NCBI RefSeq assembly: GCF_018977255.1
Contig: NW_024704771.1
Location: forward strand, 3,720,001 to 3,784,000
Length of the DNA stretch: 64,000 nucleotides
Source: Callorhinchus milii
Taxonomy: Eukaryota
Direction of reading: 5' to 3'
Position numbers and translations under genes: made by a program. Position 1 is the stretch's first letter. Every line of letters begins with the position of its first letter. Below are positions 1-62,799 of this stretch, piece after piece. The notes beneath the pieces were generated by a model, which searched no databases, was not told the origin of the DNA, and saw only the letters and a list, made by a program, of their open reading frames with translations.

Positions 1-190
1 GGGGCAGAGAGATCGAAGGCCCGCCCGCCATAACGGTGGGGCGGACGAGCCAGAGAGACGTGCAGCAGGTTGGAGCCCATTGAGCGGAGGGAGCGGGAAG
101 GATGGTAGGGGGGTTAGGGGGTCACAGAAGTAAGGATGACCAAGGCCATGGAGGGCTTTGAACGTGAGGACCAGGATCTTGAACCGTATC
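1..190 (-). mobile_element. L2-clade LINE fragment
   Basis: Resembles the reverse complement of the L2 RT 3' sequence seen at 20630-21000 and 54800-55100. Confidence 0.65.
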
Positions 191-588
191 CTCTTGTTCT
201 ATCTTCTAAACTATTGCTCTGGGTTTATTTTTTCAATCCTATTTAAAATGTTACGCTCTATAAAGTCCCCTCTGAGACGTTACATAGCTCCCCTCACACA
301 AGGTAGCCTCCCAGAATCGCCGGCCCATGTCCTCTGGTTCCACCGTTCAGTTTAACTTGTCTCCCGAGGCTCATAGCTCTGACATTAGGGATCATTTGTT
401 TCGCTCTATTGCACTTCCTCTCGGGCCTGGGAAACCCCTTATGTTGCAGTGGCAAACAGTTTGCAGTATTTTGGTGCCAAACACCGTGACGTTGATAAAA
501 CGCCTTATCACGTGAAACATTCAGACGTGGGTCACGTAGAGTGCAGTGGCTGCACATTTGTAGGCAAATGCTTCAGCCAATTTCTGCC

Positions 589-656
589 TTAGTGCCTCAA
601 ACAGCCACGAAATAAGTGAGTCCGTTTTTTGGTTTGAGAATTACTGGCCAGGATTT
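589..656 (-). CDS. Putative terminal coding exon of the B7-H6-like gene (hydrophilic tail, no TM)
   Basis: Minus-strand CTAAC branch-like motif at 676-672 and acceptor CTACAG| at 657. A phase-1 join gives EILASNSQTKKRTHLFRGCLRH* (TAA 591-589). Minus-strand AATAAA at 229-224. The polypyrimidine tract is weak. Confidence 0.4.
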
Positions 657-1041
657 CTGTAGGTGGACTTAGTTAGAGGTGAGTCAGGCCCAGGCTGAAA
701 CCCGCACTTTTACTGGCGTTGAAATGTTTGTCGTTTTATAGACATGAGAGAACGTAGCACTCATTTGCTGGGACGATAACGAGTATAATTCTCTCCCCCC
801 GAATTCCCTCACTGCACGTTTTCTCTCTTTACCTTCGAAAAACATTTATAAAATCCATCTCTCTGCATCAGCATCCCCAAACTCTTCTTCTTCCTTTCAA
901 ATCCCCATCGTCTCTGTGAAGAGCTTCAAGACGTTCATCCAACTTGACCCTATAAGTGTTGTTCTACTCACCTAACTTTGGATCATTTGGGGATGGGAGG
1001 GTTGACTGTTACACTTTGGTTACCGTTACAGTGTGACTTAC

Positions 1042-3284
1042 CCATAACTGTGATGGTCACTCTTTGTTTCACAAGAGTCTCGGACGCTTCATGTCTCACA
1101 TGACAGATGTAACTGTCACCTCCCACCACTGGAGGCGCCCTTAGGGTTAGGACATTGACAGCGCTGAAGGTCCCGTCGCTGTTCCTCACGGGATTCCCTC
1201 TCTGGATCTCCTGACCGGTCATCTCTTGCAGGGTCTCGACGGTTGAGATCTTGAACCAGAGAATGGAAATTTCTTCCGGGTAGAAACCAGAGGCCTCGCA
1301 GCGCAATGATCTCCTGAACCCGGGCTTGAGCTCCAGCAGGGGTCCAACTGGGGGAACACTGGGGGAAGCTGAACACAAGATAATGATTATTGTTAGAGGA
1401 CAATCAGATGGAATGGCTGAACAAAGCCATTCAATATAATAAATAATAAAATTCGTGACTTCAAGCCACGACTGTTTGTGGGGACGCTGCTGTGGGCAAT
1501 TTCGCCCACAAAATACACAGTCACTGCACTACAGTGTATCCTGTGAAGCGTTTTGAGACGTCTCGAAGACGTGATGAGGCGCTGTATCAAACGAGAGGAT
1601 TATTATTGTTGCGATGACTGTCAAGCTTTGGAGGGAGAGTGGACAAGAGATAGAAGTACCTGATATCCTTAAAGTGCAAGTGGCTGATCCCTCGTCGGGT
1701 GAGGCGATGACTGTACACTCGTAGTCTCCCTGATCTTCAATACCAACCTCAGGGAGGAACAGAGCTGCTTTGCCCTTTGCCAGCTCACCAGCAAACCGAG
1801 TGCCAACCCTGGACACACGAATGCCACCCTTAAAATACGAGATCACAAGCTCGTTGTTCCTCTTCCAGCTCACTAACAGGAACTGGGGTTCAACAGGTGC
1901 ATCGGGGACAAAATCGCAGTTTATGGTCACGTTCGTCCCAACGGCCGTCTTCAGCATCTGTGGACTCAGCATCACTTTCAGAGCCACTAGGAAGAGATTC
2001 ACCCGCCTCAGCGATTTCAAGTATCATCAAAAAAACAAAAGAAGCCACACTTTCTCTCTCTCTCTCTCTCTCCGAGCCAAGCTTGGTGGTCGGCAAGCGA
2101 GAGGACCCAAGGTTCAGTTCCCAGGCTGGGAGTGACCGTAGGCAAGTGTCCTCACTCCACCCCCCGCCCACCTCGGTTTGCCTCGCAGTAAGGAGGCGCC
2201 AGGCTGCTAGTCGACTTTCCAGGGGTCGTAAAGCCCTTTAAAAAAAATGTGGTCGCTCAATCCATGATTGTTTGTGGGACGCTGCTGTGCCCGAATTGGC
2301 TGCCGCGTTTCAACCACAAAATAAAATCAATTCACGTTACAGTGAATTGTGAAGCGCTTCGAGACATCCAGTAGACGTGATAAGGTGCTATACCAAATGC
2401 AAGGATTATTATTATTATTATTATATCAAATGCAAGGATTATTATTATTATTATCCCTCTCGTACACCCACCCTACCATCTCCCCCACCCCTGCATCAAG
2501 TTGCTTTTTAAATGAATCAGTGTTCTGGCTTCAATCAGCCTTCCATAAGATTGACTTCATACACAATAAATCGAACCTGCAAAGCTTTCGGAGACGCTTT
2601 GAAGTGAAAGGTAATTCGTGAAGTTGTTAGCAACACGACCTAAGGCTTGGTTTGGTTCCGAGTTACCGAGCAACCATCCTTTTCCAAACACCCAGTCTCC
2701 TGAAAGTTTATTTAACGCATTCACACTTAAAAACTAAAAAAAGTACTCACTAGGACGTCCATAATATCGGAAATTGCAAGCGAGAGGTTCGATTCACAGG
2801 CACGGGCGAAATCTTAGGCAAGTTTCCTGACTCAGAACGCCTCTGTTTCCCGAGCAGTAAATCACTCTCCGGGGTTAACAAACACTTCAAAAAAATATTA
2901 GAGTCAGGGGCGTGTCTCAAAACAAACAGGACACCTCCTAAAATAAAGAGTTACTTTACTAAATAATAGTAATAATCCTTGCATTTGCTACGGCGCCTCA
3001 TCACGTATTCACGACGTCTCAAAGCGCTTCACTGAATATACTGTAAAGTGAACTGATTGTATATTTTGTTGGTGAAATGTTGCGCACAGCGGCGTCAGTG
3101 ATTATTTAAGGAATCATTACCGCTGGAAAATATGATTTCTGGGCAAAACAGCGGCGTTCACATCCACACAACACTCACCCCATCTCCACATCCACCACAT
3201 TTCTGTTTGTCTTGTTCCTTGTCTCTTACCTGACAATAAAGCTGTCAAGAGAAGCAACAACCCCAGGGCAATAAGAGAAGCCAT
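1042..3284 (-). CDS. NCR3LG1: B7-H6 (NCR3LG1)-like Ig superfamily protein: leader + IgV + IgC1
   Basis: Three phase-1 exons with canonical AG/GT: leader 3284-3230 (MASLIALGLLLLLTALLS), IgV 1986-1660 (VTINCDF...LLVSWKR...GKAALFLPEVGIEDQGDYECTVIASPDEGSATCTLRIS), IgC1 1368-1042 (LRCEASGFYPEEISILWFK...VRNSDGTFS...YICHVRH). The C1 motif CEASGFYPE and the V end YECTVIASP resemble human B7-H6 (CESSGFYPEAINITW; YRCEVVVTP). No TM exon found in the window. Confidence 0.78.
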
Positions 3285-4399
3285 ATTCCGTGTCCGGAAA
3301 CCAAGGCTGTCACTGGAGAAAGGATCGAGCTTCCTCGGTTTATTTAACGGTGGACAACTAGTAAGGTGACTCGCTCCGAAGGACACTGCAGCAGCAGTAA
3401 CCGAAGCTCAATACGTTCCTGGCAAGTGTGCAGGTAGACTAATATTGTTGCTATGTGCTCCTGAATTGGGTGGGGAGAAAACAAAGGTTTCTTATCGCTC
3501 AGACAAGAACAGACCTGTAGAATATGCATCGTTTTGATGCTTTCTGTTTCGTACCTGTCACTCCGTTTCCTAAGCCCTTGAGAGATGGGCCTCAGATGTC
3601 CTTCGGATGAGACATTAAACAAGGCCACATTCGTCCGGGCAGGCGTTAAAGATCCTGATCGAAAAGAGACGCTAGTTTCTGTCTCTCGGTGTCCTGTCTG
3701 TTGTCATCCTGTCTGACAATCCCCAGATAAAATTGGTCGCTCGATCCAAAACGCACAGTAAAATCTGGTGATCGCTTTGAGACGTTTCAGCGGTGTAAGA
3801 AGGTTTCGGAGCTTGTTTACGTTTACATTGGCTGATTTCCACCCCGTGATGCGTCTAAAAAAAAATGCGACACATATCAACCACCAGAACAGGTTCTGCA
3901 GCTGTGAAGGCGCACGAATCAGGAAGTGTTTCGCAGATACTTGTATCATAGAGAGCATCCTGCAGTGTGAAGGGAGAATTTAAGTTAAAAAAAAGTGTTC
4001 AGTGGAGAGGAGGGGGAATGCGAAACAAATTTCAGGGGAATTTAACAAGAATTTAGATAGAATCACCGACCTGAATTATCCAGTTCTAAAGCGAAAGACT
4101 GAACAAGTTATTCAGTGGCACAAACCAATCACAACATCCTAAAGTCATACAGAAACCCTCAGACAAGAACAACAACTTGGATTTATATAGCGCCCTCCAC
4201 ACCGGACGGCGTCTCTGTTTACCAAGCAGTTAGTTAGTCGATTGGCGGATCGCTTTCCGGGGATAATAATACCTCCCCCCAGAAAATGCGATCGCTCAAT
4301 TCACGACTGTTTGTGGGACAATTGCTGTGTGCAATTGGCTGCCGAATTTCATAAGAACATAAGAAGACGAAGAAGAACAACAACAAAATTACATTTATA

Positions 4400-4890
4400 G
4401 AGCACCTTTCACATCGGGAGGACATCCCAAAGCGCTGGACAGTCAGGGGTCAGGACCTGAGCTGGGGGAAGGGTGGGGTATGGGTGAGGGAAGGCAGAGA
4501 GGTAGGAGGGCGACTGAAGGCACGATCGAAGAGGAAGGTCTTGAGACCGGACTTGAAGGAGGCGAGGGAGGAAGTGAGGCGAAGGGACTGTGGGATGGAG
4601 TTCCAGAGCGTGGGGGCAGAGAGGCTGAAAGGACGGGTCGGGGGGGAAGACATGGAACTGGCCAGAGCCCCGCTGAACGGAGGGAGCGGGCAGGTTAGTA
4701 CAGAGTCAGCAGGTCAGAGATCCTCATCCTTGAAGTTGAGGACGAGGATCTTGAATTCGATCCTCTGAGGGATGTCGGGGAGGGTGGGAGGGACGGGGTC
4801 ACGGAGCCTGGTGCGTGAGAGCACACGAGCTTCAGAGTTTTGGATGATCTGCAGCTTGTGAAGGGAAGAGTTGGGAAGGCCGATGGGGAG
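4400..4890 (-). mobile_element. L2-clade LINE 3' fragment
   Basis: Minus-strand ORF pieces [29 protein letters not shown] and FSLSAPTLWNSIP. Confidence 0.8.
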
Positions 4891-4896
4891 GGAGTT

Positions 4897-5410
4897 TCCA
4901 TCCGAGCATAAGAAATAAGAAATAGGAGCAGAAGCAGGCCCTTCAGCCCCTCGAGCCTGTGCCCCGCCATTTAAGATCATGGCTGATCTTCTAACCTAAT
5001 TCCACTTACCCGCCCTATCCCCATATCCCTTATCCCTTTAGTTTTTAAAAATCTATCAATCGCAGTCTTGAATATGTTCAATGACTGAACATCCACGGCC
5101 TTCCGGGGTAGAGAATTCCATAAATTCACTTTAATCTTGAGCTTATGACCCCTAGTTTTAGATTCTCCAACCAGGGGAAGCAGTCCCACACTATCTACTC
5201 TGTCAAGACCCTTCAGAATCTTACAGGTTTCTATAAGATCACCTCGAATTCTTCTACGTTCTAGAGAATGTAGGCCGAGTCTACTCAACCTCCCCTCGTA
5301 GGTCAAACCCTTCATGCCAGGAACCAATCTAGTGAACCTACGTTGCCCCCCCTCCAAGGCGAGTATATCCTTTCTCAGCTAAGGAAACCAAAATTGCACA
5401 CAATATTCCA
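4897..5410 (-). mobile_element. CR1-clade LINE 3' fragment
   Basis: ORF 4977-5357: QRRFTRLVPGMKGLTYEGRLSRLGLHSLERRRIRGDLIETCKILKG (CR1 RT C-terminus), plus the shark-type CR1 3' UTR (ATCAGCCATGATCTTAAATGGCGG...GGGGCTGAAGGGCCT). Confidence 0.9.
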
Positions 5411-6198
5411 GGTGCGGTCAAAACGCACAGTCACAAAACGAAAAGCACACCGTCAATCCACCTCACAATCTATTCTGTTGTGTTCCTCACAAGGTAACCA
5501 TCACCGTTGCTTAAGAGTCTCCAAAGCAAGCTGAGAGAGGACATGGACCTCCCAGAGATAGATGGTTGGAACTGAACGTGCTCTCTCCCCACCCCCCCCC
5601 CCCCCCGGAGGGACGCTCCCTGCTTACGTCTCGAAGCCCCGCTACGTCAAAAGCAAGGATTATTATTATTATTGATTGTCGAATGAGTTTCGAAACCGCG
5701 GGGGGCGGGTGGGCGGGTGGTGGGCGTTGGGTACTAAGGGAAAGTGCTCTTCGTGCACGATACACGCAGGAAGCAACATGGGTTGGTTACCATTGGAAAT
5801 GAGGTCCAAAAATGACTGTGGTTTGTACAGATTGTGCTGTAATTCAGCGGATACATTACAGCCCTTGAAACCGCAGTTTCCTGTCGAGAGTCCTGACGAG
5901 AGGTGGAGGTCAGGTAAGTGGGACAAAGCTCTGACACCGGAGGCCCACCCCCCCCCCCCCCCCCCACCCCGCGCTGTCTAACAAATCCAGAGCCGCAGAG
6001 CGACAGGGCCGGTGGGACTCTTTTTTTAAACAGCCCCTCGTCGAGACGAAACGTGGCAAAGAAACAGCCGCAGAAAAGCGCGGCGTGACTGTTTTCTTTA
6101 AGCCAATGTGGGGGAGGGAGAGAAGGGGGGAGGGAGGGAGGGAGGGAGGGCGCTCAGGATCCTTGGCCTAAAATCTGGTGCATGAGCTTCCGCGCACT

Positions 6199-6205
6199 TA
6201 TAAAT
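6199..6205 (+). promoter_or_regulatory. TATA-like element upstream of the NCR3-like gene
   Basis: TATAAAT about 215 nt upstream of the ATG at 6418, at the edge of a CpG-rich stretch (about 6240-6470); ETS-like CTTCCG just upstream. Confidence 0.3.
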
Positions 6206-6417
6206 AATTTGCATTTTCACACGCTCAGGCAGGTGCCATGGTGCAAAGCGCAATGCAACCACCCGCCCGTGTTTCCGAAGCGCCCGTCAACGAATGAGCA
6301 TTCAGCTCCTTTGCGGTCTGTCACACATTTTCCACTGGCTGCCCCCGGTCGTGTGACATAGGCTGCGTGTCTCTCGCACGCCGCGCGTCCGACTCACCAT
6401 CCCGCCATCTCACCGAG

Positions 6418-9400
6418 ATGAACGGCCTGATGCTGCTCGCGGCGTGCGCCTCGCTCGGTATTGCAGGTCGGTGCTTTTAGTTTGATTAAACATCACGGTA
6501 CAAGTGGGGTTTTATTTCCCACCTTCTCTCTCTCTCTCTCTCTCTCAAAGACGGCGAGTTTTATAGCACGGCACACGGTTCGAGTTCCGTAAGCGTGGTG
6601 GTCAGCGCCCTAACCCCGCAAGCGAGAGGACCCGAGCTTGATTCCCGGGCGGCTTGAAACCTTGGGCAAGTCTCCTTACTCCACACAAAGACACGCCTCT
6701 GTTCTTACGCAGCAGTAAGTAGGGACTCAGGTGTTAGTCGATTGGCGGATCGCATTCCAGAGATAATAATTCCCTTCAAAAAAAAAATGCGGTGACTTAA
6801 TCCACAACTGTTTGTGGGACGCTGCTGTGCGCCGTGTTTCGCCCCCGAGATAGTCACAACACGTTCGAGTATATCCTGTGCAAAGTGCGTGAGGTTTGAA
6901 AGCTCTTAGAGACCTCTCAACCACATAATCAGGTGCCGTATCTAACGATAATCCTTGCTTTATTGTTAGACAATAACTATTATTATTATTTTATCATCTA
7001 ACAGAACGGCAGAACAGGCTCGTGGGGCTGAATGGCCTACTCCTGTTCCCATGTTCCCCGTGTTTCGAGCTGCAGTTGTTGAGCAACCGAGAGAAAGGCT
7101 TTGTTGAGTTTCTGTGCCCGTGCGTTTGCTGTTTCAGGAAGGGCCTTCGGGCTGAAGGTTACTCAGCCCGGGCAGAGCCTGGTGTTGCTGAGAGGGGACG
7201 CAGCCATGTTGCAGTGCTTCTTTGAGTACAGCGGGGGTCAGCCTGGACTGGCGTCGACCGTGTGGTACAGGGAGACGCCAAGCAAAAGCGAAATCAGCGA
7301 GACCAATGCTCTGTACTCTGGTCGGGTGATCAAACCCACAGCTCGGGACCTGGCACACGGGAGGAACGCCTCACTGACCCTCAGTAACGTCACGGTGCAG
7401 GACACCGGCGTCTATTACTGCACCGTCAAGGTCACGATCCCGGGAGAGGGCAGAATGGAGAATGGCACAGGCAACGGAACCCACTTACTGGTGAGAGGTG
7501 AGCGAGACTTGCTGGAGAGAGCCAGAGGGATGGGTGGGGTAGGGGAGGCGGGGGGAGGGGGGGGTGGGGGGGGAGGTGAAAGCCGGGGGAATGGGACAGC
7601 AGGAGATCACAAACTGCACAGATTGTCACGCTATTAACGACGATAACAAATAATAATAATAATCCTTGCATTTGAATTCTTATCACATCGTCGAGACGTC
7701 TCAAAGCGCTTCACAGAACATAAAGTGGAATGACTGTACACTCTGTGGGTGAAACGGCGTCACACAAACGGTCGTGGATTGAGTGACCAAATTATTATTA
7801 TTATTTGAAGGGATTATTAGGCGATTACAGTAAAACTCTCATAAGTCATATCAGTTGGGACCGTACATTGAATATGACTTTCGCAGAGTATGAGTTATGC
7901 GAAACTTATCAATAATATTTTTTTATCATTATTATATTATTATAATAGGAAATTCAATGGGACTTGGGCAGATGTGCAACTTAGGCGATACGATTTATAA
8001 CAGATCAGACTTGGGGTGAGTTTATCACTTTGGCAATCACCTAAATCGTGCTGCCCGAGTCTTGTTAAAGTTCCTGGTTGTTAGTCGATTGGCTGATCGT
8101 TTTTTCCGGGCGTATTAATCTGTTCCAAAAAAATAATAATGTGGTCGCTCAATCCGTGACTGTGTGTGGATCAGTAACTGCTGTGCGCAATTGGCTGCCG
8201 CGTTTTGCACGTACAATATACAGTCAATTCACTTTACGGTGTATTCCGCGCGATTGATTAGGTAATGAATTAAGTAAGTGATTAATTGAGAAGGAAAATG
8301 GAGAAAAGAGGGATTGAGGGAGAGCGTTGGGAGAGTTCCAGGGACTGGATTTAATAATAATAATAATAATAATAATCCTTGCATTTGATATAGCGCTTTT
8401 CACGTCGGAAGGACGTCCCAAAGCGCTTCACAGAACACACTGTAAAGTGAATTGACTGTAAATTTGTGGGCGAACGCGGCAGCCAATTGCGCACAGCAAT
8501 GTCCCACAAACAGTCGTAGATTGAAAATGCCAATTTTATTATTGTTTTTGGTTTTTTGGAGGGATTATTATTAGGCTCCGTGTGGAGTAAGGAAACTTGC
8601 CCAAGGTTTCGACCTGCCTGGAATTGAACTCAGGTCTCTCGCTTGCAAAGCGAGTGCTCTAACCACTGAGCTACAGGACTCCACGATTTGGTGCCAGAGT
8701 GCAACCTTTTGCTCTTTCCTTTGGCCCAGCTCCCCCGGCCCCTCCGAGGATATCAACAGAAACCCTGGGGTCGCAGGTTGTCAGTGTGACCTGCAAGACA
8801 TCTGGCTTCCACCCCAGAAACATCAGCCTGGTGTGGCTGCTGAACAACAGGTCAGTCACTGACAGTGGGACTACTGTCCTGACACAGGAACCCGACTCGA
8901 CCTACTCAGCTTCCAGCGTGTTCAACGTCACCCAGACTGGCCTTCGCCCTGATGTAAGCCCCCAGGCCATCTTCGCCCAGTGCCAAGTTCTCCACCAGAC
9001 CTTGCAAACTCCTTTGAGAAGTGAAAGGATTCAGCTGCGAGTTGCCCAACCCAGTGAGTAAACAACATCCCTCAGTTAGTCTGTACAGGGTTGAATCCCC
9101 GCATTAACCTCTGTCCCCCACCCCATCACCCCAGCCCTCGCCAGGCTCCACTGGCTCCCTCTCATTCGTCTCATCCTGCTTGTCCCTCATCCCCTCTGTT
9201 TCCATCATCAGTGGTCCCGGGTTGTCAGTGTGACTACTCTTTCAGTCACTACTCCCCGAAATCCTGGAACAATCTTCCTCTTCCTTGCCCCCTTCCTTCT
9301 CCATCTTCAGGTTGCGCTTGAAGACCTTCCCCTTCGACTGTGCCTACGGTCACCCTCCCCTGCCCTCTGGCATCAGGCTCTGCCACTGCCCAGTGGTCTG

Positions 9401-10322
9401 GGACACTACCCCGGGTGACAGGTACTATATATGTACACATGGTCGCTGAATCCATCTGCCCTGAGCTAGACAGCTTTCATTGAACACCACTTCCTGAAAG
9501 ATCAGGTTAGCTCAGCTTACAGCAAGCGCTCTCACCACTGTGGCGAGAGGTTGCGAATGCGAGGCCCCAGGTCTGCATTTAACTCACAGCGTGGACCACA
9601 GAATGAATTGGCATTAAAAGCCGTCCTTTTGAGAGAAGAGGTTAAATGGAGGGTCTGTCTGTCTGAACCGGTTGACGTTAAATATCCTGCGATGCTATTA
9701 TTAGTAATGACAAGCCCTGCATTTGATGTAGCGCCTAAATCGCACAGTCGAGACATCTCAAAGCTCTTCACAGGATATACTGTAAAAGTGTCGTGACTGT
9801 TTATTTGTCGACAGAGGTGGCTGCCCAGCAGTGACCCACAAACGGTGATGGTGTGAGTGACCAATTTTATTTGGGGGGATTGTCAGCCAGGCCACTGAGA
9901 GAGAGAAACTCCCTTCTCTTTTCGAATAGCGCCTTAGGATCTTTGACGTCCACCTGTACAGGCAGACGGGAGCTCTGACAATGCAATAGCCCACCCCCCC
10001 CCCACCGGAGCGTCAGCTTAGACTATGGGGCTTGAACCCACAATCTTCTGACTCAGAGAGCAGAGTGCAACCGAATAACAGCATAACAGGCTGACAGAGC
10101 GAGCTGCAAAACCACGTGTTGTCTCATGGATCATCTAAATATAATGAAGACGTGTCAAAGCGAATGCAAGGATGATTATGATTATTATTTACCTAGGGAT
10201 TAATATTTTATGTGAACTCTACACAACAGGTCTGAATACTCCCCTTGTGATCGGCTTGATAAGCGTCTGTGTTCTGGCTCCGGCCCTGATTGGTATTGCT
10301 TACTATTTACTTCGAAAAGAAG
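6418..10322 (+). CDS. NCR3: NKp30 (NCR3)-like receptor: leader + VJ-type IgV + IgC1 + TM
   Basis: Phase-1 exons: leader 6418-6466 ([16 protein letters not shown]), V 7138-7497 (LKVTQP...LQCFF...TVWYRE...YSGRV...[22 protein letters not shown]...[10 protein letters not shown]; NKp30 ends GTGNGTRLVV), C1 8730-9053 ([18 protein letters not shown]...[14 protein letters not shown]), TM 10230-10322 ([27 protein letters not shown]). All boundaries are AG/GT. Confidence 0.8.
8353..8682 (-). mobile_element. Full-length tRNA-derived SINE with L2-like tail (young subfamily)
   Basis: Head GGAGTCCTGTAGCTCAGTGG...GAGTTCAATTCC (A and B boxes); tail TGTGAAGCGCTTTGGGACGTCC...AAATGCAAGG(ATT)n. Near-identical copies at 41935-42256 and 53270-53594. 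The same family is scattered throughout the window. Confidence 0.9.
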
Positions 10323-10961
10323 GTAAAACCCGTGACAAGGCAAGGTTACTGTAACCGGCAGTGAGAGAGTTACTTACACCAATGCAATATCACACTTACA
10401 CAGCGCCTTTCACGTCAAGAGGACGTCCCAAAGCGCTGGACCTGAGCCGGGGGTCAGGATCGGGATCAGGATCAGGAGTGTGTGGGTAGGAGGGTGACCG
10501 AAGGCTCGGCCGAAGAGGTTTTGAGCCACTCCTTGAAGGAGGCGAGGGAGGGAGCGAGGCAAAGGGAATGTGGGACGGAGTCCCACAGGGTGGGGGCAGA
10601 AAGGCGCATTGGTCAACGGTGGGACGGGCCGGGCAGGAGCAAGGGGCCAAGGTTCTGGACCTGCCTTGGTAAGGTGGAGTGTGCATCCCTGGACGGTGAT
10701 GCTGTCAGTACATCAGAGATGAGAGAATGCTGTGACACGGCAGAATTAATAATAATAATCTTTGCACTTAACGCAGCATCTTATTACATCGTCGAGACGT
10801 CTCAAAGCGCTTCACAGTATAGTGGAGTGACTTCATATTTTGTGAGCAAAACATAGCAGCAAAATTGCACACAGCAGCGTCCCCACAAACAGCCGTAAAG
10901 TCATCGAATAATTTAATTTGAATTTGGGGGATTTCAGACCTGGACACCGGGGGAGAGAGAG

Positions 10962-10994
<33 letters not shown>

Positions 10995-12071
10995 AACTCT
11001 TCTCTCTTTTTGAGTAGCGCTGCGGGATCTTTAACGTCCACCTGAAACAGGCAGACGGTTTAACATCGCATCCGAAGTACGAGGCGCTAAGCAACAAACC
11101 GAATCACATTGTAACGCGGTGCAATTGCTTTCACAGAGATACGCCAAGTTCCAGAGAGAAGTTCGCACACTGTAAGTAGATTTTTTTTGGGGGGGTGGGG
11201 GGGGGGGTGGCGCGTCAGGTCAAAAGCAGACTGAGATTTCCACATATGTGTGTCACCAACACGTGGAAATTTCCCTGCGTCTGGAATGCAATGCACACTC
11301 TCTCCCCATCAGCGTTGCTTAACAGTCTCCAAACCAGGCTGAGATTTCCATGCATCCCATTTCCTTGGAAATTCCAGCGATAGATTGTTGGAATGAATAC
11401 TCTCCCTGCAGATAAGTGCCCAGCTCGCCTAATTCCGGAGAGTATGAGGCACAGGGCTTTGTGGCTTGTGGTTAATGGGAACTAAATGGGAAGAATCTCT
11501 ACTCCCAATACTAAAATTAATTCTTGCATTTGATATAGCGCTTTATTGCATCTCCGAGACGACTCCAAGCACTTCACAAAACATAATCGAAAGTGAATCG
11601 ACTGTATATTTGGTGGGCGCAATGCGGCAGCAAATTGCGCCCAGCGGCGTCCCACAAACAGTCGTGGATTGAATGACCCATTTATTTTATTTTTTTGGAA
11701 GGAATTATTACCCCGCGGAAAGCCATCCGCTAATTGACGAGCAACCAGGTTCCTACTTATCGCTAGGCAAACGGAAGCGTGCGGGTAAGGAAACTTGCCC
11801 AACCTTTTGCCCTGCCGGGAATCGAACCCAGGTCTCTTGCTTGCGAGGCGAGCGCCCTAACCACTGAGTTACAGGACTCCAAGCAACAATTACACAGAGC
11901 CTTTCACGTTGGGAGGACATCCCAAGGCGCTGGACAGGTAAGGAATCGCACCTGATCTGGGGATGACAATTTTTTTGTTAATTTTTCCGAAGGTGGACTG
12001 GACGGACACAATAAACCCAATCTACGCCACAATCAAATTCTCAGATTGAAACAGAAAAGACGTTCCCACAG

Positions 12072-12098
12072 GGAGTTCTGCCCACGAATTGAATGAGC
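12072..12098 (+). CDS. Putative short cytoplasmic exon of the NCR3-like gene
   Basis: Acceptor TTCCCACAG|, 27-nt phase-1 exon (GSSAHELNE), donor C|GTAAGG. The terminal exon is unresolved; AATAAA at 12480-12485 and 12539-12544. Confidence 0.45.
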
Positions 12099-12880
12099 GT
12101 AAGGTTTCGAGCTTACCTTACCTTACTTGCTGTGAAGGGCATCTCCAATCAGGACATCGGAAAGATTATTCATTCTTTTGATCGTCTGTAAATTCAAAAA
12201 ATGAAAAATTTGTAGAGGCAGAACAGTTAATAGGACTGCGTGATGTCAAGAAATATTTGTTTATGCACCAAACCAGAAAAACAAGTACGTGTGCAGAGAT
12301 TAGAGACATTCAGAGAAATGTTATCTGTCAGCTCAAGATGCGTAACGAGGAGTTGGCTGGTGTTATCAGTGGGAAACAGAGTGGTTTCATGTCCCAACAT
12401 ATAGTGTAAATACAGCATTTTTGTGTATGGAACTATAGCCGACAACCAAGTATTATTTTATTTCCATGTGTATATAACCAATAAAAAAAAACCTTGTTTT
12501 GGCCCAAACTGTCCTTGTCAAGCCGGTGTTTATCCTGCAATAAAAGTAGAATTTATTTCTTACAGAAAGCACAACCTGCCCCCAAATACTGGGTGTTTGC
12601 TGTCCTGAAAAGGAAACATACGAACAGGAGGCCATTCAGCGCCTCGTGTCTGTTACGCCATTCTATAAGATTTTGGTTGATCCTCCAATTACCCGCCTTT
12701 GCCCTGTTATCCCCGGATACACTTACCTAACAGTGCCTTGATATGGATTCTGAATGGATCCAGGAGCCACGGCATTTGGGGAAGAGAGTTCCACAGAGGG
12801 CGAGAAAGCAGGTCAGAGAGATAGGGAAGTGTGAAAGGATTTGTACGCAAATGAAAGGATCTTGAAATCGATCTGTTCTG

Positions 12881-13235
12881 TGATAGGGAGCCGGTGGAGC
12901 CTGGCGAGGGCTGGGGTGATGGGGGTACAGGGTTTAGTGTGTGTGTTAGGGAGCCGGTGGAGCCTGGCGAGGACTGGGGTGATGGGGGTACGGGTTAGTG
13001 TGTGATAGGGAGCCAGTGGAGCCTGGCGAGGGCTGGGGTGATGGGGGTACAGGGGTTAGTGTGTGATAGGGAGCCGGTGGAGCCTGGCGAGGGCTGGGGT
13101 GATGGGGGTACAGGGGTTAGTGTGTGATAGGGAGCCAGTGGAGCCTGGTGAGGGCTGGGGTGATGGGGGTACAGGGGTTAGTGTGTGCGATAGGGAGCCA
13201 GTGGAGCCTGGCGAGGGCTGGGGTGATGGGGGACA
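12881..13235. repeat. About 61-bp minisatellite (6 copies) inside an L2 fragment
   Basis: GGGAGCC(G/A)GTGGAGCCTGGCGAGGGCTGGGGTGATGGGGGTAC... starting at 12886, 12949, 13007, 13068, 13129 and 13193. Confidence 0.9.
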
Positions 13236-14108
13236 GAAGTTAGTGTGGGTTGGAATACGGGCAGCGCAGTTCTGAATCAGTAGTTTGGTTTGGAGGAGTT
13301 GGAGGACATTGGGTCCAGTCGAGGCGGGAGGTTATGAAGGTGGAGATGAGGGTTTCAAGTGTGTCGAGTGTAACAGTCTCGAAACACCACATAAAGTGTT
13401 GACACACGGAATACGTTTATTTTTTATTCACACAGATTTATATATAAAAAAAATCAGTACAAACAGGGAGACAGACGTGTAAACAGCTCTGTGTACAGAG
13501 CCAAGACGGGCTCCTACGCATTGTCACGAACGACAAACACGAGTGTGCAAGGCACGGGGACGTGCAAATAAATACAATTAATAGTGCATCTCTCTATCTG
13601 GCTAACAGCTGGAATGAGTGTATATAAAAACAGAAGTGGCCGGGAAACACTCAGCGGGTCAGGCAGCATCTACGGAGAGAGAGGAGAAAGTGAGTTCACC
13701 TTTCAGGTCGATGGCCTTTCTTTCATCAGTGGTCATCGGTCTGACGAAAAGCTCTCCATAGATGCTGCCTGACCTGCTGAGCGCTCCCGGACACTTCTGT
13801 TATTGTTTCAGATATCCAGCATCTGCAGTATTTTGGCTTTGGGAATCATTGGGTGTTTTATTTTCACTACGGGCAAGAACCAGCTTGTTGGGGAGGGGAA
13901 AAGGCATTTAAATAGACAAGCAATATCAGTCGCTCTCTCTCACTTTATTCTCCATTAACTGAAGCAGATTTTTCTGTTGGTCAGCCGGGTGTCTGACACG
14001 CGCGGAAACCCATCACCGTGCTTAAGGGTCTGCAAACCAAGCTGAGAATTCCACGGATCCCACCTACGCCTGGAAATCCCAGCGGTAGATTGTTGGAAAG
14101 GAACGCGC

Positions 14109-14897: not shown

Positions 14898-15805
14898 TTA
14901 TTTCTGGAGCGTGCCGACAGGTTTCTTTCTGAGCTGCCAGAGGTGGCCCTGGATTGTCAGGGCGTCCACGTTGGCAGACATTGTCTTGGAGGGGATGGGT
15001 TGGAACTGTTTGCGATCGGAGTTGTACTTGTACAGGTTCTCGATCATTTTCTTCTGGATGCTGCGTGGCCCTGAGCCGGCCAGTTTGTGGATCTCCTCCA
15101 TCTCGGGGCAATAGGAATAGAGGGCCCGGAACTGGCACTGGTGGTCACGGAACAGAATCACGCACTGGTTCAGCCCACACTTCTCCAGCTCCTGTAACAC
15201 CAACACACGATCAGATCAACGCCAACGCACAATCAGAGTAACACCAACACACAATCAGAGTAACACCAACACACAATCAGAGTAACACCAACACACAATC
15301 AGAGTAACACCAACACACAATCAACACCAACACACAATCAGATCAACACCAACACACAATCAGAGTAACACCAACACACAATCAGAGTAACACCAACACA
15401 CAATCAGCTCAATACTAACACCAACATACAATCAACTAACTCATCAACAACAACTCACTCACTCACTCACTCACTCACTCACTTACTCACTCACTCAACA
15501 GCTTACATTTACGCAGCACCTATCCCGTTGGGAGGACGTCTCAAAGCGCTTCACAGGGTTTGCTGTAAAGGGTTTTGTAGGCGAACGAGACAGCCACCAA
15601 GTGCACGAACAGCAGATCGTGTTCACGAGCTACACCTGAGGCAGAGCGGCAGCGGAGACTGTTTTGCTCAACCGAGTGTCTTGACACCCGCGGAAACTCA
15701 TCACCGTCACTTAAGAGTCTCCAAACCCCAACTGAGAATTCCAGGCATCCCACCTACACATGGACATCCCGGAGAGAGATTGTAGGAACAGAATGCGCTC
15801 CCCCC

Positions 15806-15842
<37 letters not shown>

Positions 15843-17531
15843 CCTGGAGGGACGCACCCTGCTGACCGAATTCCAGAGAGCATTAGGCGCAGGTTGGCAA
15901 GGGCTGAGATCTTGGAGAGCCCAGAGTGTGTGTTGGGGTAACTGCTGGAGTCTGACCAGCTACAACCATTGATATCGCTGTCACAGTGACTGCGTTGAGA
16001 GCTAGGCCACTCACTCACCTCGATCATGATGCTTCTCTGAGACTCATTAGCTTTGCCGGCCAGACAGCAGTGGTTCAAGGCGTTGTGCAGAATGAGCCGG
16101 TTGGATTTGGCGCTGGGCTCCTTAAACATCCGCAGACCTGGGCGACAGACCAGAGACAGTATGCACAGAGTCACGCAGCTCCCATTTGCACCGAGAGACT
16201 GCCTTGCACTTAAAAGCACCACAGCATCGACAACACTACCACCACCGGCGCACCCCTCAGACAGGATAGCCTCTCGGAGCTCACCGCACCAACGTTACGC
16301 TTAAAAGCGTCGCAGAAACGTCAGGCAGAGACGGATCACAAAGCTGCATTTAATAATAACAATCTTTGCACTTGAAAAAAGCGCCTTATCACGTTGCTGA
16401 GGCGCTTCACAGAATATCCTGTAAAGTACAGTGACCGTGTGATTTTGTGGGCGAAACACGACAGCCAATTGCGCACAGCAGTGTCCCACAAGCAGTTGTG
16501 GATTAAGCGACCGCATTTTTTCGGGGGTCTATTGCCCCCGGAAAGGGCTCCGTCAATGGACTAACAACCAGGTTCCTGATTACTGCTTGGTCAACAGAGG
16601 CGTGCGTGAAGTGGAGTAAAGGGAAGGTTTCGCACCGCCCGGGTGAACTCGCTTCACCATTATCCTCTCCCCCCCCCCCGTGCCCCCGTCCCAGCCTATA
16701 GCTCAGTGGTTAGACGTCCGCCAGACCTCCATGTGATTCTCGCGCAGGGCGAAATGTTGGGCAACTTACTCCACACACACGCACGCGCCTCTGTCTACCT
16801 GGCGGTAAGCAAGAACCGACTGTTAAGTCAATTGGCGGATCGTTTCTTCTGATGGCAATAATTCCTTCCCCACAAAAAAAGAATAATAATAAAATACTAA
16901 ATAATACTGATTAAAAACAAGTCAATCCACGACTGTTTTTGGGGGGGGGAAGCTGTTGTGCGCAATTGGCTGCCGAGTTTCGCCCACAGAATATGCAGTC
17001 ACCACACTTTACAGTATATTCTCTCAAGCGCTTCGAGACGTCTCGAAGATCTGAGGAGGGGCGCTGTGTCAAATGCAAGGATCATCATTATTATGATTAT
17101 TATCATTATTATAATTATTATAATTATTGTAATTATTGTAATTATTGTAATTATTATAATTATTATTATGAGTACTATGATTAATATGATTATTGTGATT
17201 ATTAGGGTTATTAGGATTATTATCCTCCTCCTCGGTGAACGGCCCAGGTACCTGGTGACTCTGTGGCTGGGTGTCTGTCCTTCTCCGCAGTGGGAGTATT
17301 GCTCAGGATCAGGGTCCTGGACATGGTGGACGCAGCCTCTGGCTGCTGCTCCCTGAATAAGCCACAAACAGAACCTTAACACAAGTTATTTTCTGCCCGA
17401 CCGGGTGTCTGACACACACACACACAAGAAAATCCATCGCCGTTGCTTAAGAGTCTCCAAACCCAACTGAGAATTCCATGGATCTCACCTCCATCTGGAA
17501 ATCCCAGAGATAAATTGTTGGAATGAATGTG

Positions 17532-17562
<31 letters not shown>

Positions 17563-33756: not shown

Positions 33757-36700
33757 TCATGCTTTGATGGGGGCCTTGTTCTGTACTTTCTGGAAGTCCT
33801 GCTGTAGTTTGGCGAGGGTCTCTCTGTGTTGCTCGGACTTCTTCTCTAGGTCTTTCATCTGGGTCTCGTATCGCTTTCTGCAGGAGACGGGAAGTGTGAG
33901 AAAGAACGTAACATCATAATAATCCCTGCATTCGAGACACTGGATAGGGGATTGACTGTATATTTGTGGGCGAAACGCGGCAGCCAATTGCGCACGGCAG
34001 AGTCCCACAAACAGTCGCGGATTGAAGTGACCAAATTATTATTATTATTTTTTTGAAGGATTATTATCCCCGATGAAGTGATCCGCCAATCGACTAACAA
34101 GCGGGTTCCTACTTGCTGCTGGGTAAGCAGAGGCGTGTGGAGTAAGGAAAGTTGCCCAACATTTTGCCCTGACGGGAATCGAACCCCAGGTGTCTCGCTT
34201 GCGAGGCGAGTGCTCCAAAACACTGAGCTACAGGATTCCTTAAAAATTTGCTGGACGAAAGACCAAGGTCCATTTAGTTCGCCTTCCCTCATCCCAGCAG
34301 TTGCATGACATCAACGGATATGGGGCAAATGTGGGTAAAATGGAGTTGAGGTACAGATCAGCGATGAATGGTGGAACAGGCTCGAGGGGCCGAATGGCCT
34401 CCTCCTGTGATTCGAGGACCCACAGACTTGGGGGCTGGTGGGGGTGGTGGGGGGTATGTGAAGTGTGACTCACATCTCTCCGTTGATGTAATCCAATCGC
34501 TTTGTGACGGTGGACTTCGCCTCTTCTAGATCCTGTTTGACAAGGACTGGGCCAATCAGCTTGAAGACGGTGTTCGATGACTCCAACAGGTTCAACTCCT
34601 GAGGGAGGGAGGGAGGGAGGGAGTGAGGGGGAAACGGAGAGAGGGAGAGAGAGAGAAAAAAAAGACAGAAAGCACAGGTACAGAGAAATCAACACAGAGC
34701 TGACGGCAGGATCAACTTCAGGGCCTTCACTCCCCAGCACCTCCCTACATACCCCATCCTCCGCCCACCTCAATCCCTCCACCTGGTCCCCTCTTTATCC
34801 ATCTTTAAATCCGAGTGACCGACAGTGTCCTGGCCAACGATCCCCCCCAAATAAAATCGGTCACTCGTTTCACGGCTGTTTGTGAGACGCTGCTGTGCGC
34901 AATTGTCCTGCCGTGTTCGCCTACAAATACAGTCACTGTGTTCAAAGCAATTCCCGTTGAGATGTTCTTCCTTCCACTTGACGCCTTATTGCGTCGTTGA
35001 GGCGTCTCAAAGCGCTTCACGGAATGTATTATAAAGTGGAATGACCGTTAGATCGCAGCAGCCAATTACGCGCAGCAGTGAACCGCACAGTCGTGGACTG
35101 AGTGTGACCACATTTTTTTTAAAAGGGAAAGTGATCCGCCAATCGACTGACAACCGGGTTCCTACGTATCACCAGGTAAACGGAGGCGCGTGGAGGATGG
35201 AAACTTGCCGAAGGTTTCGCCCTCTCCGAGAATCGAACCCGGGTCCTCTCACTTGCAACACGAGAGCGCTAACCGCTACGCAAAGGTTATTATTATTAGT
35301 TTTCTGAAACAATAGGGACATGGGACAGGTGTCAGGAAAACCTAAGTGATTTTCCTGTATCCGGAATACATATACGTCTGTTTTCCTATATTAAGAATTG
35401 GACAAACGCCATGACATCTCCCTTCACACTAAACGTTTTGTTGCCCTGGCAACTAACAAACTTTTTTTGCTGAGATTTTCTGCTCAAAGCGCTTAACAGA
35501 ATACACTGTAAAGTGAATTGACTGTATACTTTGTGGGCAAAACGCAGCAGCCAATTGCATGGATTGAGTGACCAATTTTTTTGGGGGGGGAAAGTGAAAT
35601 TGCTTTCCGGAGGAGGCAATAATCCTTTCAAAAAAAAAATAATAACTTGGTCACTCACTCCACGATTGCTTGCGAGACATTTGCTGCTGCGTTTCGCCGA
35701 CAAAATACACAGTCACTACACTTCACAGTATATTCTATCAAGTGCTTTGAAATGTCTTGATAAGGCACTATATCATCCGCTAATTCACTAATAACTGTGT
35801 TCCTACTTACTGCTGGGTAAACAGAGTGCGGAGTAAGGAAACTTGCCTAGAGTTTCGCCCTGCCCTGCCCAGGAGTCGAACCCTCATCCTCCCGCTTGCG
35901 AGGCGAGAGCACTAGACCCTACGCTACGGGACTCGATATATCAAATGCAAGGATAATTATTGTTACAGAAATCATCGTTGGGAGCCTTACCTCTTTAACT
36001 ATTGTATTTTCAGTCACCTGCGCTTCCAGCTTCTGTCTCGCCGAGAGACATTTGCTGAGATCTGCGAGAGGAAAGGACAGTGTTAAATAAGTACCAGACG
36101 TGATACGGATGTGAAACAATATATATATATATTCCTGTTTGACCTTGATTCCTAATTCTTCAAATTCAGGCATTTCAAATAAAATCCTGGAAAATTTGAC
36201 AGTGATTTTATTTGAAACCTTCGCGATTCATGGCAGTCACTTTTTTTTTTCCTAACTCAAATATGTTGCTGAGGGAGAGGGGCAGGGAAGTCTACATGGA
36301 GTTGAAGTGCTTCCTAAGGTGACTGGCAACAGCATGTGTGGATCAAGCCAGCCCTCTGCGACAGTGTCTAGTCTGGTTCCTGAGCCAGTATGCCAGGACA
36401 CTGTTGATGACGGCACGGCCGGGCCTGGCTCATCGGCAGCGCCTGCGAGGGCAGACCGGTCCCTGGGGGCCGGGAATCCTCCGACTCAGCTCCTGTTAAC
36501 ATTGCAGCCAAAGCCCTGACAGGTAGGGTGGTCCCAGCTGGACAAGCAGCGGGAAAGCTTGCCAGACAGTGATATCAATGGCAAGCTATGTGGTTTTAGC
36601 TGGTTAGTCTCCAGCAGTTACGCCAACTCTGGGGTCCCCAAGCCTTGGCTCTTGCCAACCTGCGCCTAATGCTCTCCAGAATTACGTCAGTTGGGTGCCT

Positions 36701-37374
36701 CCCTCCAGGGAGTGTGTGCACATTCTATTCCAAAAATCTATCTCTGGGATTTTCACATGTTGGTGGGATGGATACATGGAAATCTCAGCTTGTTTTGGAG
36801 ACTTTTAAACACGTGCGTCAGACACCCGGCTGACCAAAAAACAGAGAGATCTTGCAACTGCTCCGTATCTCCAGCAGTTTCTGATCACAATCATGTCATG
36901 CAATGAGCTATGATACCCGGAAATGTTTACAGGGCAGTGGTTTAACCTGGGGTTTGGGTTATAAACTGATCTTTGTGTACTAGTGACTCTAGAAACATGT
37001 GAACAGGAGGAGGCCATTCAGCTCCTCGAGCCTGTTCCGCTATTCTTTTAGATCATGGCTGATCTGTACCTCAACACCAAATACCTACCTTTACCCTACA
37101 TCGCTTGGTAATCTGACCTAACAAACATCTCTCTCCCTCAGTCTTGAAAGTGTGAATGGATCCAACCATAATCCACAGCCTTTTGGGGGAAGAGAGTTCT
37201 AGATTTCCACTACCATTTGGGTGAAAAACTGCCTCCTGATTTCACTCGTAAATGGCTTAGTTCTAATTTTAAGATAATGTCTCTTTCCTCTGGATTCTTC
37301 CCACTGACCAGAGGAAATAGTTTCTCTGTATCTACCCTATCAAATCCCTGTATCATTTTAAACACTTCAATTAG

Positions 37375-37408
<34 letters not shown>

Positions 37409-39010
37409 AGGTTCCCGCCCCCCCACTTCCCCCCTTCTGGTCGAGGTCTCTTGTCCTCTCATTCTCTCTGGTTCTCCCTATTCATCTTTCAGGAATTCTC
37501 TTTTTATCTGTCTCTCTCTCTCTAGTGGGGATCTCTCTTTCTCTGTAGAGTTACACACATTTACAGTGTGTTATGTCTTTCTCTATCTGTCTGGGTCTCT
37601 CTTGCGTCTCTACCTGCCTCTTAGGGAATCTCTCAGGCTTTTTCTGCGTATGTCTCCCTCTCCCGTGGTCTTTCAATTTGTCTCTAAGATTTCCTCTTTC
37701 TGTGTGTGTTTGTCTCAGTCTCTAACTCTCTCAGCATCTCTCGCTCCCTCTCAGTGACTCAATCTGAGTCTCTCTCTCGGAATCTCTCCCTCTCTCTATT
37801 CCTCTCTCTCTCTCTATTTCTCTCTCTCTGTCCATTCCTCTCTCTCTCTCTCCCTAGTCCTATTCTCTCTCTCTCTCCCCCTATTCCTCTCTCTCTCTCC
37901 CCCTATTCCTCCCTCTCTATCTCTCTACCCCTATTCCTCTCTCCCTATTCCTACTCTCCCTCCCTATTCCTCTCTCTCTCCCTATTCCTTTCTCTCCCTC
38001 TCTATATATTCCTCTCTCTCTCTCTCTATTCGCCTCTCTTCCTCTCTCTATTCCCCTCTCTCTCTCTCGATTCCTCTCTCTCTCTATTTCCCCCCTCTCT
38101 CTCTATTCCCCTCTCTCTCTCTATTCCCTTCTCTCTCTATTCCTCCCCTCTCTCTCTCTATTCCCCCCTCTCTCTCTCTATTCCCCTCTCTCTCTCTCTC
38201 TCTCTATTCCCCCTCTCTCTCTCTCTCTCTATTCCCCTCTCTCTCTATTCCCCTCTCTCTATTCCCCTCTCTCTCTCTATTCCCCCCTCTCTCTCTCTAT
38301 TCCCCTCTCTCTCTCTCTATTCCCCTCTCTCTATTCCCCTCTCTCTCTATTCCCCTCTCTCTATTCCCCTCTCTCTCTCTCTATTCCCTTCTCTCTCTCT
38401 CTCTATTCCCCCCTTCTCTCTCTCTCTATTCCCCCTCTCTCTCTTATTCCCCCCCTCTCTCTATTCCCCTCTCTCTCTATTCCCCCCTCTCTCTCTATTC
38501 CCTTCTCTCTCTATTCCCCCCTCTCTCTCTCTATTCCCCTCTCTCTATTCCCCTCTCTCTATTCCCCCCTCTCTCTCTTCCCCCCTCTCTCTCTCTATTC
38601 CCCTCTCTCTCTCTATTCCCCTCTCTCTCTCTATTCCCCTCTCTCTCTCTATTCCCCTCTCTCTCTCTCTCTATTCCCCTCTCTCTCTCTCTCTATTCCC
38701 CATTCTCTCTCTCTCTATTCCCCTCTCTCTCTCTCTATTCCCCTCTCTCTCTCTCTCTCTATTCCCCTCTCTCTCTCTATTCCCCTCTCTCTCTCTATTC
38801 CCTTCTCTCTCTATTCCCCCCCTCTCTCTCTCTATTCCCCTCTCTCTCTCTCTCTCTCTATTCCCCTCTCTCTCTCTCTCTATTCCCCTCTCTCTCTCTC
38901 TCTCTATTCCTCTCTCTCTCTCTATCCCTCTCTCTGGAGTCTGTACCTTTCTGTAGTTGTTGGTATTTCTCGAGCTCCGCCTGGAGCTTCCTCTGCTGCA
39001 AGTCCGCCAT
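33757..39010 (-). CDS. PFDN6: Prefoldin subunit 6
   Basis: Exons 39010-38947, 36061-35991, 34598-34474 and 33877-33757 (381 nt, 126 aa): MADLQQRKLQAELEKYQQLQKDLSKCLSARQKLEAQVTENTIVKEELNLL...VFKLIGPVLVKQDLEEAK...KRLDYINGEIKRYETQMKDLEKKSEQHRETLAKLQQDFQ. AATAAA (-) at 33714-33709. Confidence 0.97.
37790..38935. repeat. About 1.1-kb (CT)n-ATTCCC pyrimidine tract in PFDN6 intron 1
   Basis: Variable CTCTCT runs punctuated by ATTCCC; ends about 10 nt from the exon-1 donor. Confidence 0.92.
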
Positions 39011-41424: not shown

Positions 41425-50461
<9,037 letters not shown>

Positions 50462-50475
50462 GATGGCTGCGCGGC

Positions 50476-50493
50476 AGAGAGAGAGAGAGAGGG
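50476..50493 (-). promoter_or_regulatory. 5' terminal oligopyrimidine (TOP) tract of RPL7A
   Basis: CCCTCTCTCTCTCTCTCT 15 nt upstream of the ATG-only first coding exon, in a CpG island (about 49800-50570). Confidence 0.75.
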
Positions 50494-50574
50494 CGCGCGC
50501 TGCACTCTGGGCCGTCTTGGGCTTCTGTGCTCTCGCGGCAGCGTCTCGCGAGATCGGCCTCGTCTCCTGGCAAC

Positions 50575-52030: not shown

Positions 52031-52817
52031 GCCTGTCCATCAGCACCAGAAACATCAACAATATCATATTATATTAGTTATAAAATAATATAATAATAAA
52101 ACAATAATATAAGAATAATATAGGAATGTGATCATAATATTATATGATGTATAATATTAAATTATACTAATATAAGAATATAAGAATGTGATCATAATGT
52201 ATAATATAATATAATACAATATATGAATTATAATAAAATAATATATAATGGTATAATATAATAAAATGTAATAATAAAATAATATTGTGATGAAAATATA
52301 ATAATAATACTTGCATTTGATATAGAGTATCCATATAGAGATCTTAATGATGATATAATAATATAATGATATAATAATACAATAATGTTATAATAGTATA
52401 ATAATGATATAATAATATAATAATACAATAAAATAATAGTTTAATAATATAAAAATAATTATCTTTGCATTTGATATAGCATCTTATGGCTTTTTCGAGA
52501 CATCTCAAAGCGTTTCGCAAGACATATTGTACAGTGTAGTCGCTGTGTATTTTGCGGGCGAAATGCTATCCACATCCTCAGAGATCTTAGTCTTTGCACT
52601 AACTTCAGACACCATCCCCATGGACTTCAGAGTTCATCCACTGTCTCCATCCTGGTGGTCAGTCAATTAGCCAATTGCACACAGCAGTGTCCCACAAACA
52701 GTGGTCGATTCAGTGACCGAATTATTATTTTTTTTAAAAAATTTCCAAAGGATTATTACTCGCCCTACCCGTGAATCAAACCTTTCTTTTGCTTGAGAGG
52801 TGAGTAAGCAAACCAAC

Positions 52818-57074: not shown

Positions 57075-57111
<37 letters not shown>

Positions 57112-62675: not shown

Positions 62676-62799
62676 GTATTCGTCAATTGATTTTTTTGTT
62701 CATTCTTTTATCGTTTAGGATGTTGGAAAGCCCAGATATAACACAGAAGCCCTGACCCAGTTTACTGTGCAAATTTCTGCCCTGTTCATCAAAATCTCT

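Follow-up and report, generated by a model that had tools for sequence, protein, structure and literature searches.

In the genome of the holocephalan Callorhinchus milii (elephant shark), a predicted member of the B7-H6 (NCR3LG1) family (gene A) and a gene with an NKp30-like (NCR3-like) variable (V) domain (gene B) were found head-to-head and transcribed away from each other, with an ATG-to-ATG distance of 3,134 bp. The pair stands at the left of a 64,000-nucleotide stretch of DNA (scaffold MU249860.1:3,720,001-3,784,000, assembly GCA_018977255.1), hereafter the window, in which four N runs were left as they stand. The family assignments of both genes and their arrangement are very probably correct, and the interpretation preferred here, to which a probability of about 60% is given, is that A and B would form a functional ligand-receptor pair by analogy with the human NKp30-B7-H6 complex. 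A first-pass annotation of this DNA had proposed a B7-H6-like leader-V-C1 gene on the minus strand (ATG at 3284) and an NCR3-like gene on the plus strand (ATG at 6418) diverging across about 3.1 kb, and the analyses described below agree with it on the spacing, on gene A and, as far as the V domain is concerned, on gene B.

Gene A is encoded on the minus strand by a leader exon (3284..3230; ATG at 3284, phase-1 donor G|GTAAGA) identical to the start of XP_042200825.1, an exon for a B7-type V domain (1986..1660; Pfam V-set, 4.9e-8) and a C1 exon (1368..1042; Pfam C1-set, 8e-12), all in phase 1 and with AG/GT borders. Once joined, these exons correspond to residues 1-236 of RefSeq XP_042200825.1, a protein of 263 aa named "NCR3 ligand 1-like". 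The search of this protein by tblastn on the C. milii gene A locus (L001), whose initial 13,284 bp are the exact reverse complement of window positions 1-13,284 (0 mismatches), located the transmembrane (TM) exon at L001 14212-14292, about 0.9 kb beyond the left window edge, completing the V, C1 and TM layout of a type I membrane protein. In the exons of both genes, Pfam recovered the V-set and C1-set domains each in the expected exon. Just downstream of the gene A TM exon, L001 14212-16383 (0.9-3.1 kb left of the window) carries two further exons, one V-like and degenerate and the other C1-like, which probably represent the remains of a tandem copy, and the older gene A models of 512-561 aa were rejected as fusions with this module. 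Where the TM exon ends, a frameshift further separates the old models from the new, one running to a short stop and the other through a more natural basic stop-transfer sequence. Apart from this degenerate module and the exons of genes A and B, the window and the adjoining 11 kb on the left showed no immunoglobulin (Ig)-type exon.

The family of gene A was addressed by means of structural comparison. The whole protein was modelled without templates by AlphaFold2 (AF2), with frog and lizard relatives forming the input alignment, reaching a predicted local distance difference test (pLDDT) score of 86.4, and the comparison of this model with the PDB by Foldseek revealed human B7-H6 at ranks 1 to 7 (E 8e-20 to 1e-18; 28% identity over ~220 columns, target TM-score 0.76-0.84), followed by PD-L1 at rank 8 (E 1.6e-15, 17% identity), butyrophilin at rank 17 (E 3.7e-14, 18%) and tapasin at rank 35 (E 1.7e-13, 20%), the E-value of B7-H6 being ~10,000-fold better than that of PD-L1. 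Moreover, the membrane-proximal domain was a true C1-set domain according to Pfam, as in mammalian B7-H6 and in the frog and lizard NCR3LG1 proteins. The Foldseek ranking and this C1-set domain together place gene A, at family level and as judged from the predicted structure, in the B7-H6 (NCR3LG1) family. Its similarity to a frog NCR3LG1-like protein extended over V, C1 and TM (30% identity, E 3e-28), lizard NCR3LG1 proteins were ~30% identical to it, and when 1.8 billion cluster representatives were searched exhaustively, no relative exceeded ~38% identity. Tapasin/TAPBPR, butyrophilin and CD276 were rejected as identities of gene A by the Foldseek ranking. The gene A leader is spliced straight to the V exon, the large N-terminal domain that precedes the Ig domains of tapasin and TAPBPR not being present, and in a maximum-likelihood tree of V-C1 proteins the butyrophilin, TAPBPL and CD276-like rows stood on long branches away from gene A.

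The automatic names of the nearest V-C1 relatives were inconsistent from species to species: "NCR3LG1-like" or "NR3L1" in frog and bichir, "B7 like protein 6" in mole-rat, "tapasin-related-like" also in bichir and "SIRP-like" in coelacanth and Xenopus, while those of lungfish, skate and bamboo shark were uncharacterized. A protein profile search was dominated by anuran paralogues and returned no cartilaginous-fish or mammalian anchors. Many of the frog proteins of this family reach ~1,000-1,100 aa (P0179-P0226; P0171) and the lizard NCR3LG1 models ~870-940 aa, and in the shorter frog forms the hydrophobic segment is followed by an additional, conserved Ig-like domain; these proteins could be the product of fused tandem genes, or else their multi-domain layout could be real.

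Gene B is organized on the plus strand as a split leader exon (6418-6466; ATG at 6418, phase-1 donor), which is present in UniParc UPI0004574DFD, a germline-joined variable-joining (VJ) exon (7138-7497; Pfam V-set, 2.4e-10), an unannotated C1 exon (8730-9053; Pfam C1-set, 5.6e-11; phase-1 AG/GT borders) and a TM exon whose translation has no charged residue in the membrane segment (10230-10322) and whose frame ends ten codons on, at a read-through stop (10352-10354), if the last donor is unused. All four exons are open, in phase 1 and bounded by canonical splice sites, and no further Ig exons were found between leader, V, C1 and TM. The VJ domain preserves the canonical Cys-Trp-Cys residues and a G strand of the form GxGTxLxV, and the ectodomain carries seven N-glycosylation sequons. 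The C1 exon would probably be part of the gene B messenger RNA, because its frame is intact, its residues are conserved, the ectodomain bears the seven sequons and its splice sites are phase-compatible; its PDB matches were the constant domain of Ig light chains, SIRP domain 2 (59 bits, in two stretches) and the C1 domain of shark UrIg2 (43 bits). Downstream of the TM exon, from 10.3 kb to the 3′ end of a CAMSAP1-type gene, no exon coding for an immunoreceptor tyrosine-based activation or inhibition motif (ITAM or ITIM) was found, and there is little room for a tail exon because this opposite-strand gene ends at ~14.9 kb, which confines gene B to 6.4-14.9 kb.

Rfam reported minus-strand matches to transfer RNA (tRNA) in repeat-rich sequence at window positions 8609-8680, 11807-11878, 53521-53590, 54553-54625 and others, which probably belong to tRNA-derived short interspersed nuclear elements (SINEs). 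The introns of genes A and B are filled by a SINE family, and one of the tRNA-like matches ends 49 bp before the gene B C1 exon.

The comparison of the gene B V exon with the PDB by phmmer revealed human NKp30 as the best single-domain match, with 44.2 bits (E 1.7e-10) and ~33% identity over the whole domain in a single stretch, both proteins sharing the hexapeptide GTGNGT within a GTGNGT-L-V J motif. The sole entry placed above NKp30 was an antibody fusion whose score was summed from three weak stretches. The V domain of SIRP-alpha obtained 35.4 bits, TAPBPR 30.7 bits, and CAR, CTLA-4 and TCR-alpha ~29 bits, and the V domain of UrIg2 was absent among the top 60 PDB matches. In agreement with this ranking, UniProt A0A4W3GK94, which derives from the Ensembl model, names gene B "Natural cytotoxicity triggering receptor 3". 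When AF2 was run on this V domain without an alignment, the model (pLDDT 39.8) was not taken on to a fold search. The identification of gene B as a SIRP was rejected, considering its single C1 exon (SIRP being V-C1-C1), the lack of an ITIM and of a charged TM residue, and a V score below that of NKp30. On sequence grounds, the V domain of gene B can be regarded as NKp30-like and the gene as a whole as something other than a plain NKp30. Grouping with tapasin or SIRP, the outcome that the first-pass annotation had named as contrary to its proposal, is therefore disfavoured, with tapasin only at Foldseek rank 35 for gene A and SIRP-alpha at 35 bits against 44 for NKp30 in gene B.

In the preferred interpretation, gene A would act as a cell-surface ligand, as human B7-H6 does in its complex with NKp30, and the V domain of gene B, displayed on a cytotoxic or natural killer (NK)-like lymphocyte, would recognize it in trans by a V-to-V contact, while receptor and ligand alleles that match each other would stay together owing to the close linkage. 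The uncharged TM segment and the lack of an ITAM or ITIM exon suggest that gene B, whose TM segment would be followed by a very short tail, may need a partner chain, perhaps through C1 pairing, or may not signal.

Several observations weigh against this interpretation. Gene B departs from NKp30 by its C1 exon and by the lack of a transmembrane arginine and of a signalling motif, and at its position no gene is listed in the current NCBI set. The Ensembl model behind A0A4W3GK94 comprises only the V exon and intron read-through, and the older 150-aa model likewise runs from the V exon into the intron; word-indexed protein searches with the V exon alone or with the longer open frame matched only this 150-aa model. 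The human NKp30 residues that contact B7-H6 were not conserved in gene B when aligned with NKp30, which is uninformative if the pair co-evolves. Regarding gene A, its V domain alone did not discriminate among B7 members when searched by phmmer against the PDB (B7-H6 and VTCN1 24 bits, CD276 ~28, PD-L1 28-31), and the V-C1 tree was star-like, with lineage-specific clades in which gene A was sister to a lungfish protein (99/97) and not to amniote B7-H6.

The main alternative, which is somewhat unlikely, holds that gene B is no orthologue of NKp30 but a distinct VJ-C1-TM chain that does not rearrange, of the antigen-receptor or SIRP/UrIg type, that its V domain is merely NKp30-like, that its ligand need not be gene A, and that the adjacency of both genes reflects an old Ig superfamily cluster in a major histocompatibility complex (MHC) or MHC-paralogous region. 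The leader-VJ-C1-TM order is indeed that of T-cell receptor and Ig chains and not that of mammalian NKp30, the C1 exon finds its matches in Ig light chains, SIRP and UrIg2, the elasmobranch NCR3 clusters are found at DDAH2-AIF1 and away from PFDN6, and two of the gene B neighbours, CAMSAP1 and RPL7A, are genes of human 9q34. Antigen-receptor precursors and UrIg2 have been placed on the 9q34 paralogon in the literature. However, the V domain of gene B clearly scored best with NKp30, with the UrIg2 V domain outside the top 60, and the gene was named NCR3 by Ensembl and UniProt; moreover, it has one C1 exon against two in SIRP and three or more in UrIg, and lacks both the charged TM residue of SIRP-beta and the ITIM of SIRP-alpha.

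It is very unlikely, in turn, that the whole of gene B or just its C1 and TM exons represent an unexpressed or decaying relic and that the pair has no present function. The missing gene B entry in the current NCBI set, the older models ending in the intron after the V exon, the missing signalling motif and charged TM residue, and the SINE-packed introns, with one copy ending just before the C1 exon, would fit such a relic. Nevertheless, the four exons remain open, in phase and canonically spliced, and the Cys-Trp-Cys residues, the J motif and the seven sequons have been kept, which would not be expected of neutral decay.

The intergenic spacer (3285..6417; 3,133 bp) bears on the question of co-regulation. 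Interspersed repeats with further copies in the window make up at least 34% of it, mainly in a mid-spacer block of ~0.8 kb (4210-5031), and SINE copies are present in it; unique sequence extends over ~0.9 kb beside gene A and ~1.4 kb beside gene B. No CpG island was found in the spacer, whose CpG observed/expected ratio is ~0.5-0.85 over most of its length. A TATAAATA element was read at 6199-6206 on the plus strand, ~210 bp upstream of the gene B ATG, and is a possible TATA-like core promoter element of this gene. The repeats, the lack of a CpG island and the unique sequence at each ATG point to two promoters, so that genes A and B most likely use separate ones, and the co-regulated cassette suggested by the first-pass annotation was not supported by this analysis. 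That a single bidirectional promoter drives both genes is very unlikely, since the divergent orientation and the short spacing that would favour it are set against a distance of 3.1 kb that exceeds the span of classical bidirectional promoters (less than ~1 kb, and CpG-rich), a low CpG ratio, a repeat block in the middle of the spacer and a TATA-like element close to gene B only. The origin of the pair by inverted duplication was also rejected, because the only inverted repeats at the pair are SINE copies.

Concerning the surrounding genes, a CAMSAP1-type gene lies tail-to-tail with gene B on the minus strand (14901-24681), where Pfam placed its CKK exons between 14.9 and 16.0 kb (2.5e-33 and 1.8e-11) and a CC1 region at 22.9-24.7 kb (2.6e-8), and the best PDB match of its CKK exon was CAMSAP1, with 133 bits against 117-120 for CAMSAP3. 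It is followed on the same strand by PFDN6 (34473..39010; Prefoldin_2 exon at 34473-34688, 9.5e-10, first coding exon with its ATG at 39010) and by a multi-exon RPL7A gene (42345-48658; Ribosomal_L7Ae, 1.6e-7), which stands between PFDN6 and a B3GALT-family gene and whose introns harbor, according to Rfam, two copies of SNORD36 (81 and 78 bits) with two further weak ones and one SNORD24 (62 bits), SNORD36 and SNORD24 being intronic small nucleolar RNAs of human RPL7A as well. The B3GALT-family open reading frame (ORF), on the plus strand (62767-63893; Galactosyl_T), had B3GALT5 as its best PDB match and is called B3GALT4 by position. Its Galactosyl_T profile is split over two frames (profile positions 2-75 in one and 74-193 in the second). 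A frameshift must therefore lie within or close to the ORF overlap at 63285-63390, due either to an assembly error or to pseudogenization. Strongly skewed GC-rich low-complexity tracts at window positions 50000-52100 and 56700-58600, the latter broken by three N runs, give long spurious ORFs.

The presence of PFDN6 and of a B3GALT-type gene in the window, anticipated by the first-pass annotation, was confirmed by the Prefoldin_2 exon and the Galactosyl_T ORF; its description of the locus as an MHC-type region held only in part. In human, PFDN6 and B3GALT4 belong to the extended class II region at 6p21.3, and CAMSAP1 and RPL7A to 9q34, an MHC-paralogous region. Since markers of both regions are mixed here, with the RPL7A gene and its SNORD24/36 and the CAMSAP1-type gene on the 9q34 side, the term is only partly apt.

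The human NCR3 gene lies between DDAH2 and AIF1, in class III. In elasmobranchs, NCR3 clusters have been described between these same genes, with five genes in the great white shark and three in the sawfish, and the wdr46-b3galt4-pfdn6 block is megabases away from them (Verissimo et al. 2023, PMC10751288). Two uncharacterized genes separate the sawfish NCR3 genes from AIF1. The neighbours of gene B in the window are CAMSAP1, PFDN6 and RPL7A, and it does not occupy the class III position beside AIF1/DDAH2. On the ligand side, the NCR3LG1 gene of Lacerta agilis adjoins a nucleobindin gene (L003 1-5202 and 10001-24694), which makes it a synteny-anchored orthologue, NUCB2 standing beside NCR3LG1 at 11p15.1 in human. 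Gene A does not share this synteny of amniote NCR3LG1, having gene B and CAMSAP1 as neighbours, and no NKp30-like exon was found within 10 kb of the Lacerta NCR3LG1 or of a frog NCR3LG1-like gene. As far as tested, the tight pairing is particular to the C. milii locus, and the ancestral arrangement envisaged for it is not supported by the elasmobranch NCR3 genes at DDAH2-AIF1 or by the lizard NCR3LG1 locus.

The NCR3 and B7-H6 families have already been reported in cartilaginous fish, where NCR3 of sharks is known to be MHC-linked, both are known in C. milii, and in public annotation the two genes already bear the names NCR3LG1-like and NCR3; the definition of the two families is unchanged, and the locus represents a useful testable case and not a new kind of system. 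NKp30 is reportedly the one NK receptor conserved across jawed vertebrates, with B7-H6 co-evolving with it, and the co-evolution stressed by these reports is said to be one of copy number and not of physical adjacency. The features of most interest are the tight pairing and the VJ-C1-TM layout. A candidate receptor and its candidate ligand 3 kb apart allow a direct test of whether receptors and their ligands were at first inherited together within a primordial immune complex and whether linkage drives their co-evolution, and a possible VJ-C1-TM receptor is of interest for finding antigen-receptor relatives that do not rearrange. It could even be proposed, although this is unlikely, that gene B is expressed as a germline-joined leader-VJ-C1-TM chain, an NKp30-type V domain set in the exact domain order of a T-cell receptor or Ig chain. 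The VJ-C1 precursor of antigen receptors that has been postulated for the proto-MHC would then survive in this gene, physically linked to its ligand and inherited with it as a recognition cassette in a region that combines 6p21.3 and 9q34-paralogon genes.

Compared with the human NKp30-B7-H6 pair (PDB 3PV6, 6YJP), gene A presents the layout of B7-H6, in which a B7-type V domain precedes the C1-set domain and the TM segment, although its RefSeq model is without the long cytoplasmic tail of human B7-H6. Gene B resembles human NKp30 in its non-rearranging VJ domain with the same GTGNGT-L-V G-strand motif, and differs from it by a probable additional C1 domain, the NKp30 ectodomain being one V domain plus a stalk, and by the absence of the TM arginine of NKp30. 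The identities are only ~28-33%, and the C. milii genes are 3.1 kb apart, in contrast to NCR3 (6p21.33) and NCR3LG1 (11p15.1), which are unlinked on separate chromosomes in human. Gene A belongs to the same V-C1 family as amniote NCR3LG1, from which it differs by the nucleobindin neighbour found in Lacerta.

Among cartilaginous fish, the NCR3 genes of the nurse shark (MT914154-MT914161) and the clusters of the great white shark and sawfish are, like gene B, MHC-associated, non-rearranging VJ genes, although they map to class III at DDAH2-AIF1 and gene B beside CAMSAP1 and PFDN6; the shark NCR3 genes are reportedly single-V receptors, whereas gene B has a C1 exon. With UrIg, UrIg2 and SIRP, germline VJ-C1 genes that have been proposed to be related to antigen receptors, gene B shares a split leader and a germline-joined VJ exon followed by C1-set sequence, its C1 domain matching that of UrIg2 and SIRP domain 2. 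However, the UrIg of the shark MHC has three C1 domains and is secreted, the UrIg2 of the nurse shark antigen-receptor complex has nine, and SIRP has two together with ITIMs or a charged TM residue, whereas gene B combines an NKp30-like V domain with one C1 domain and a plain TM segment.

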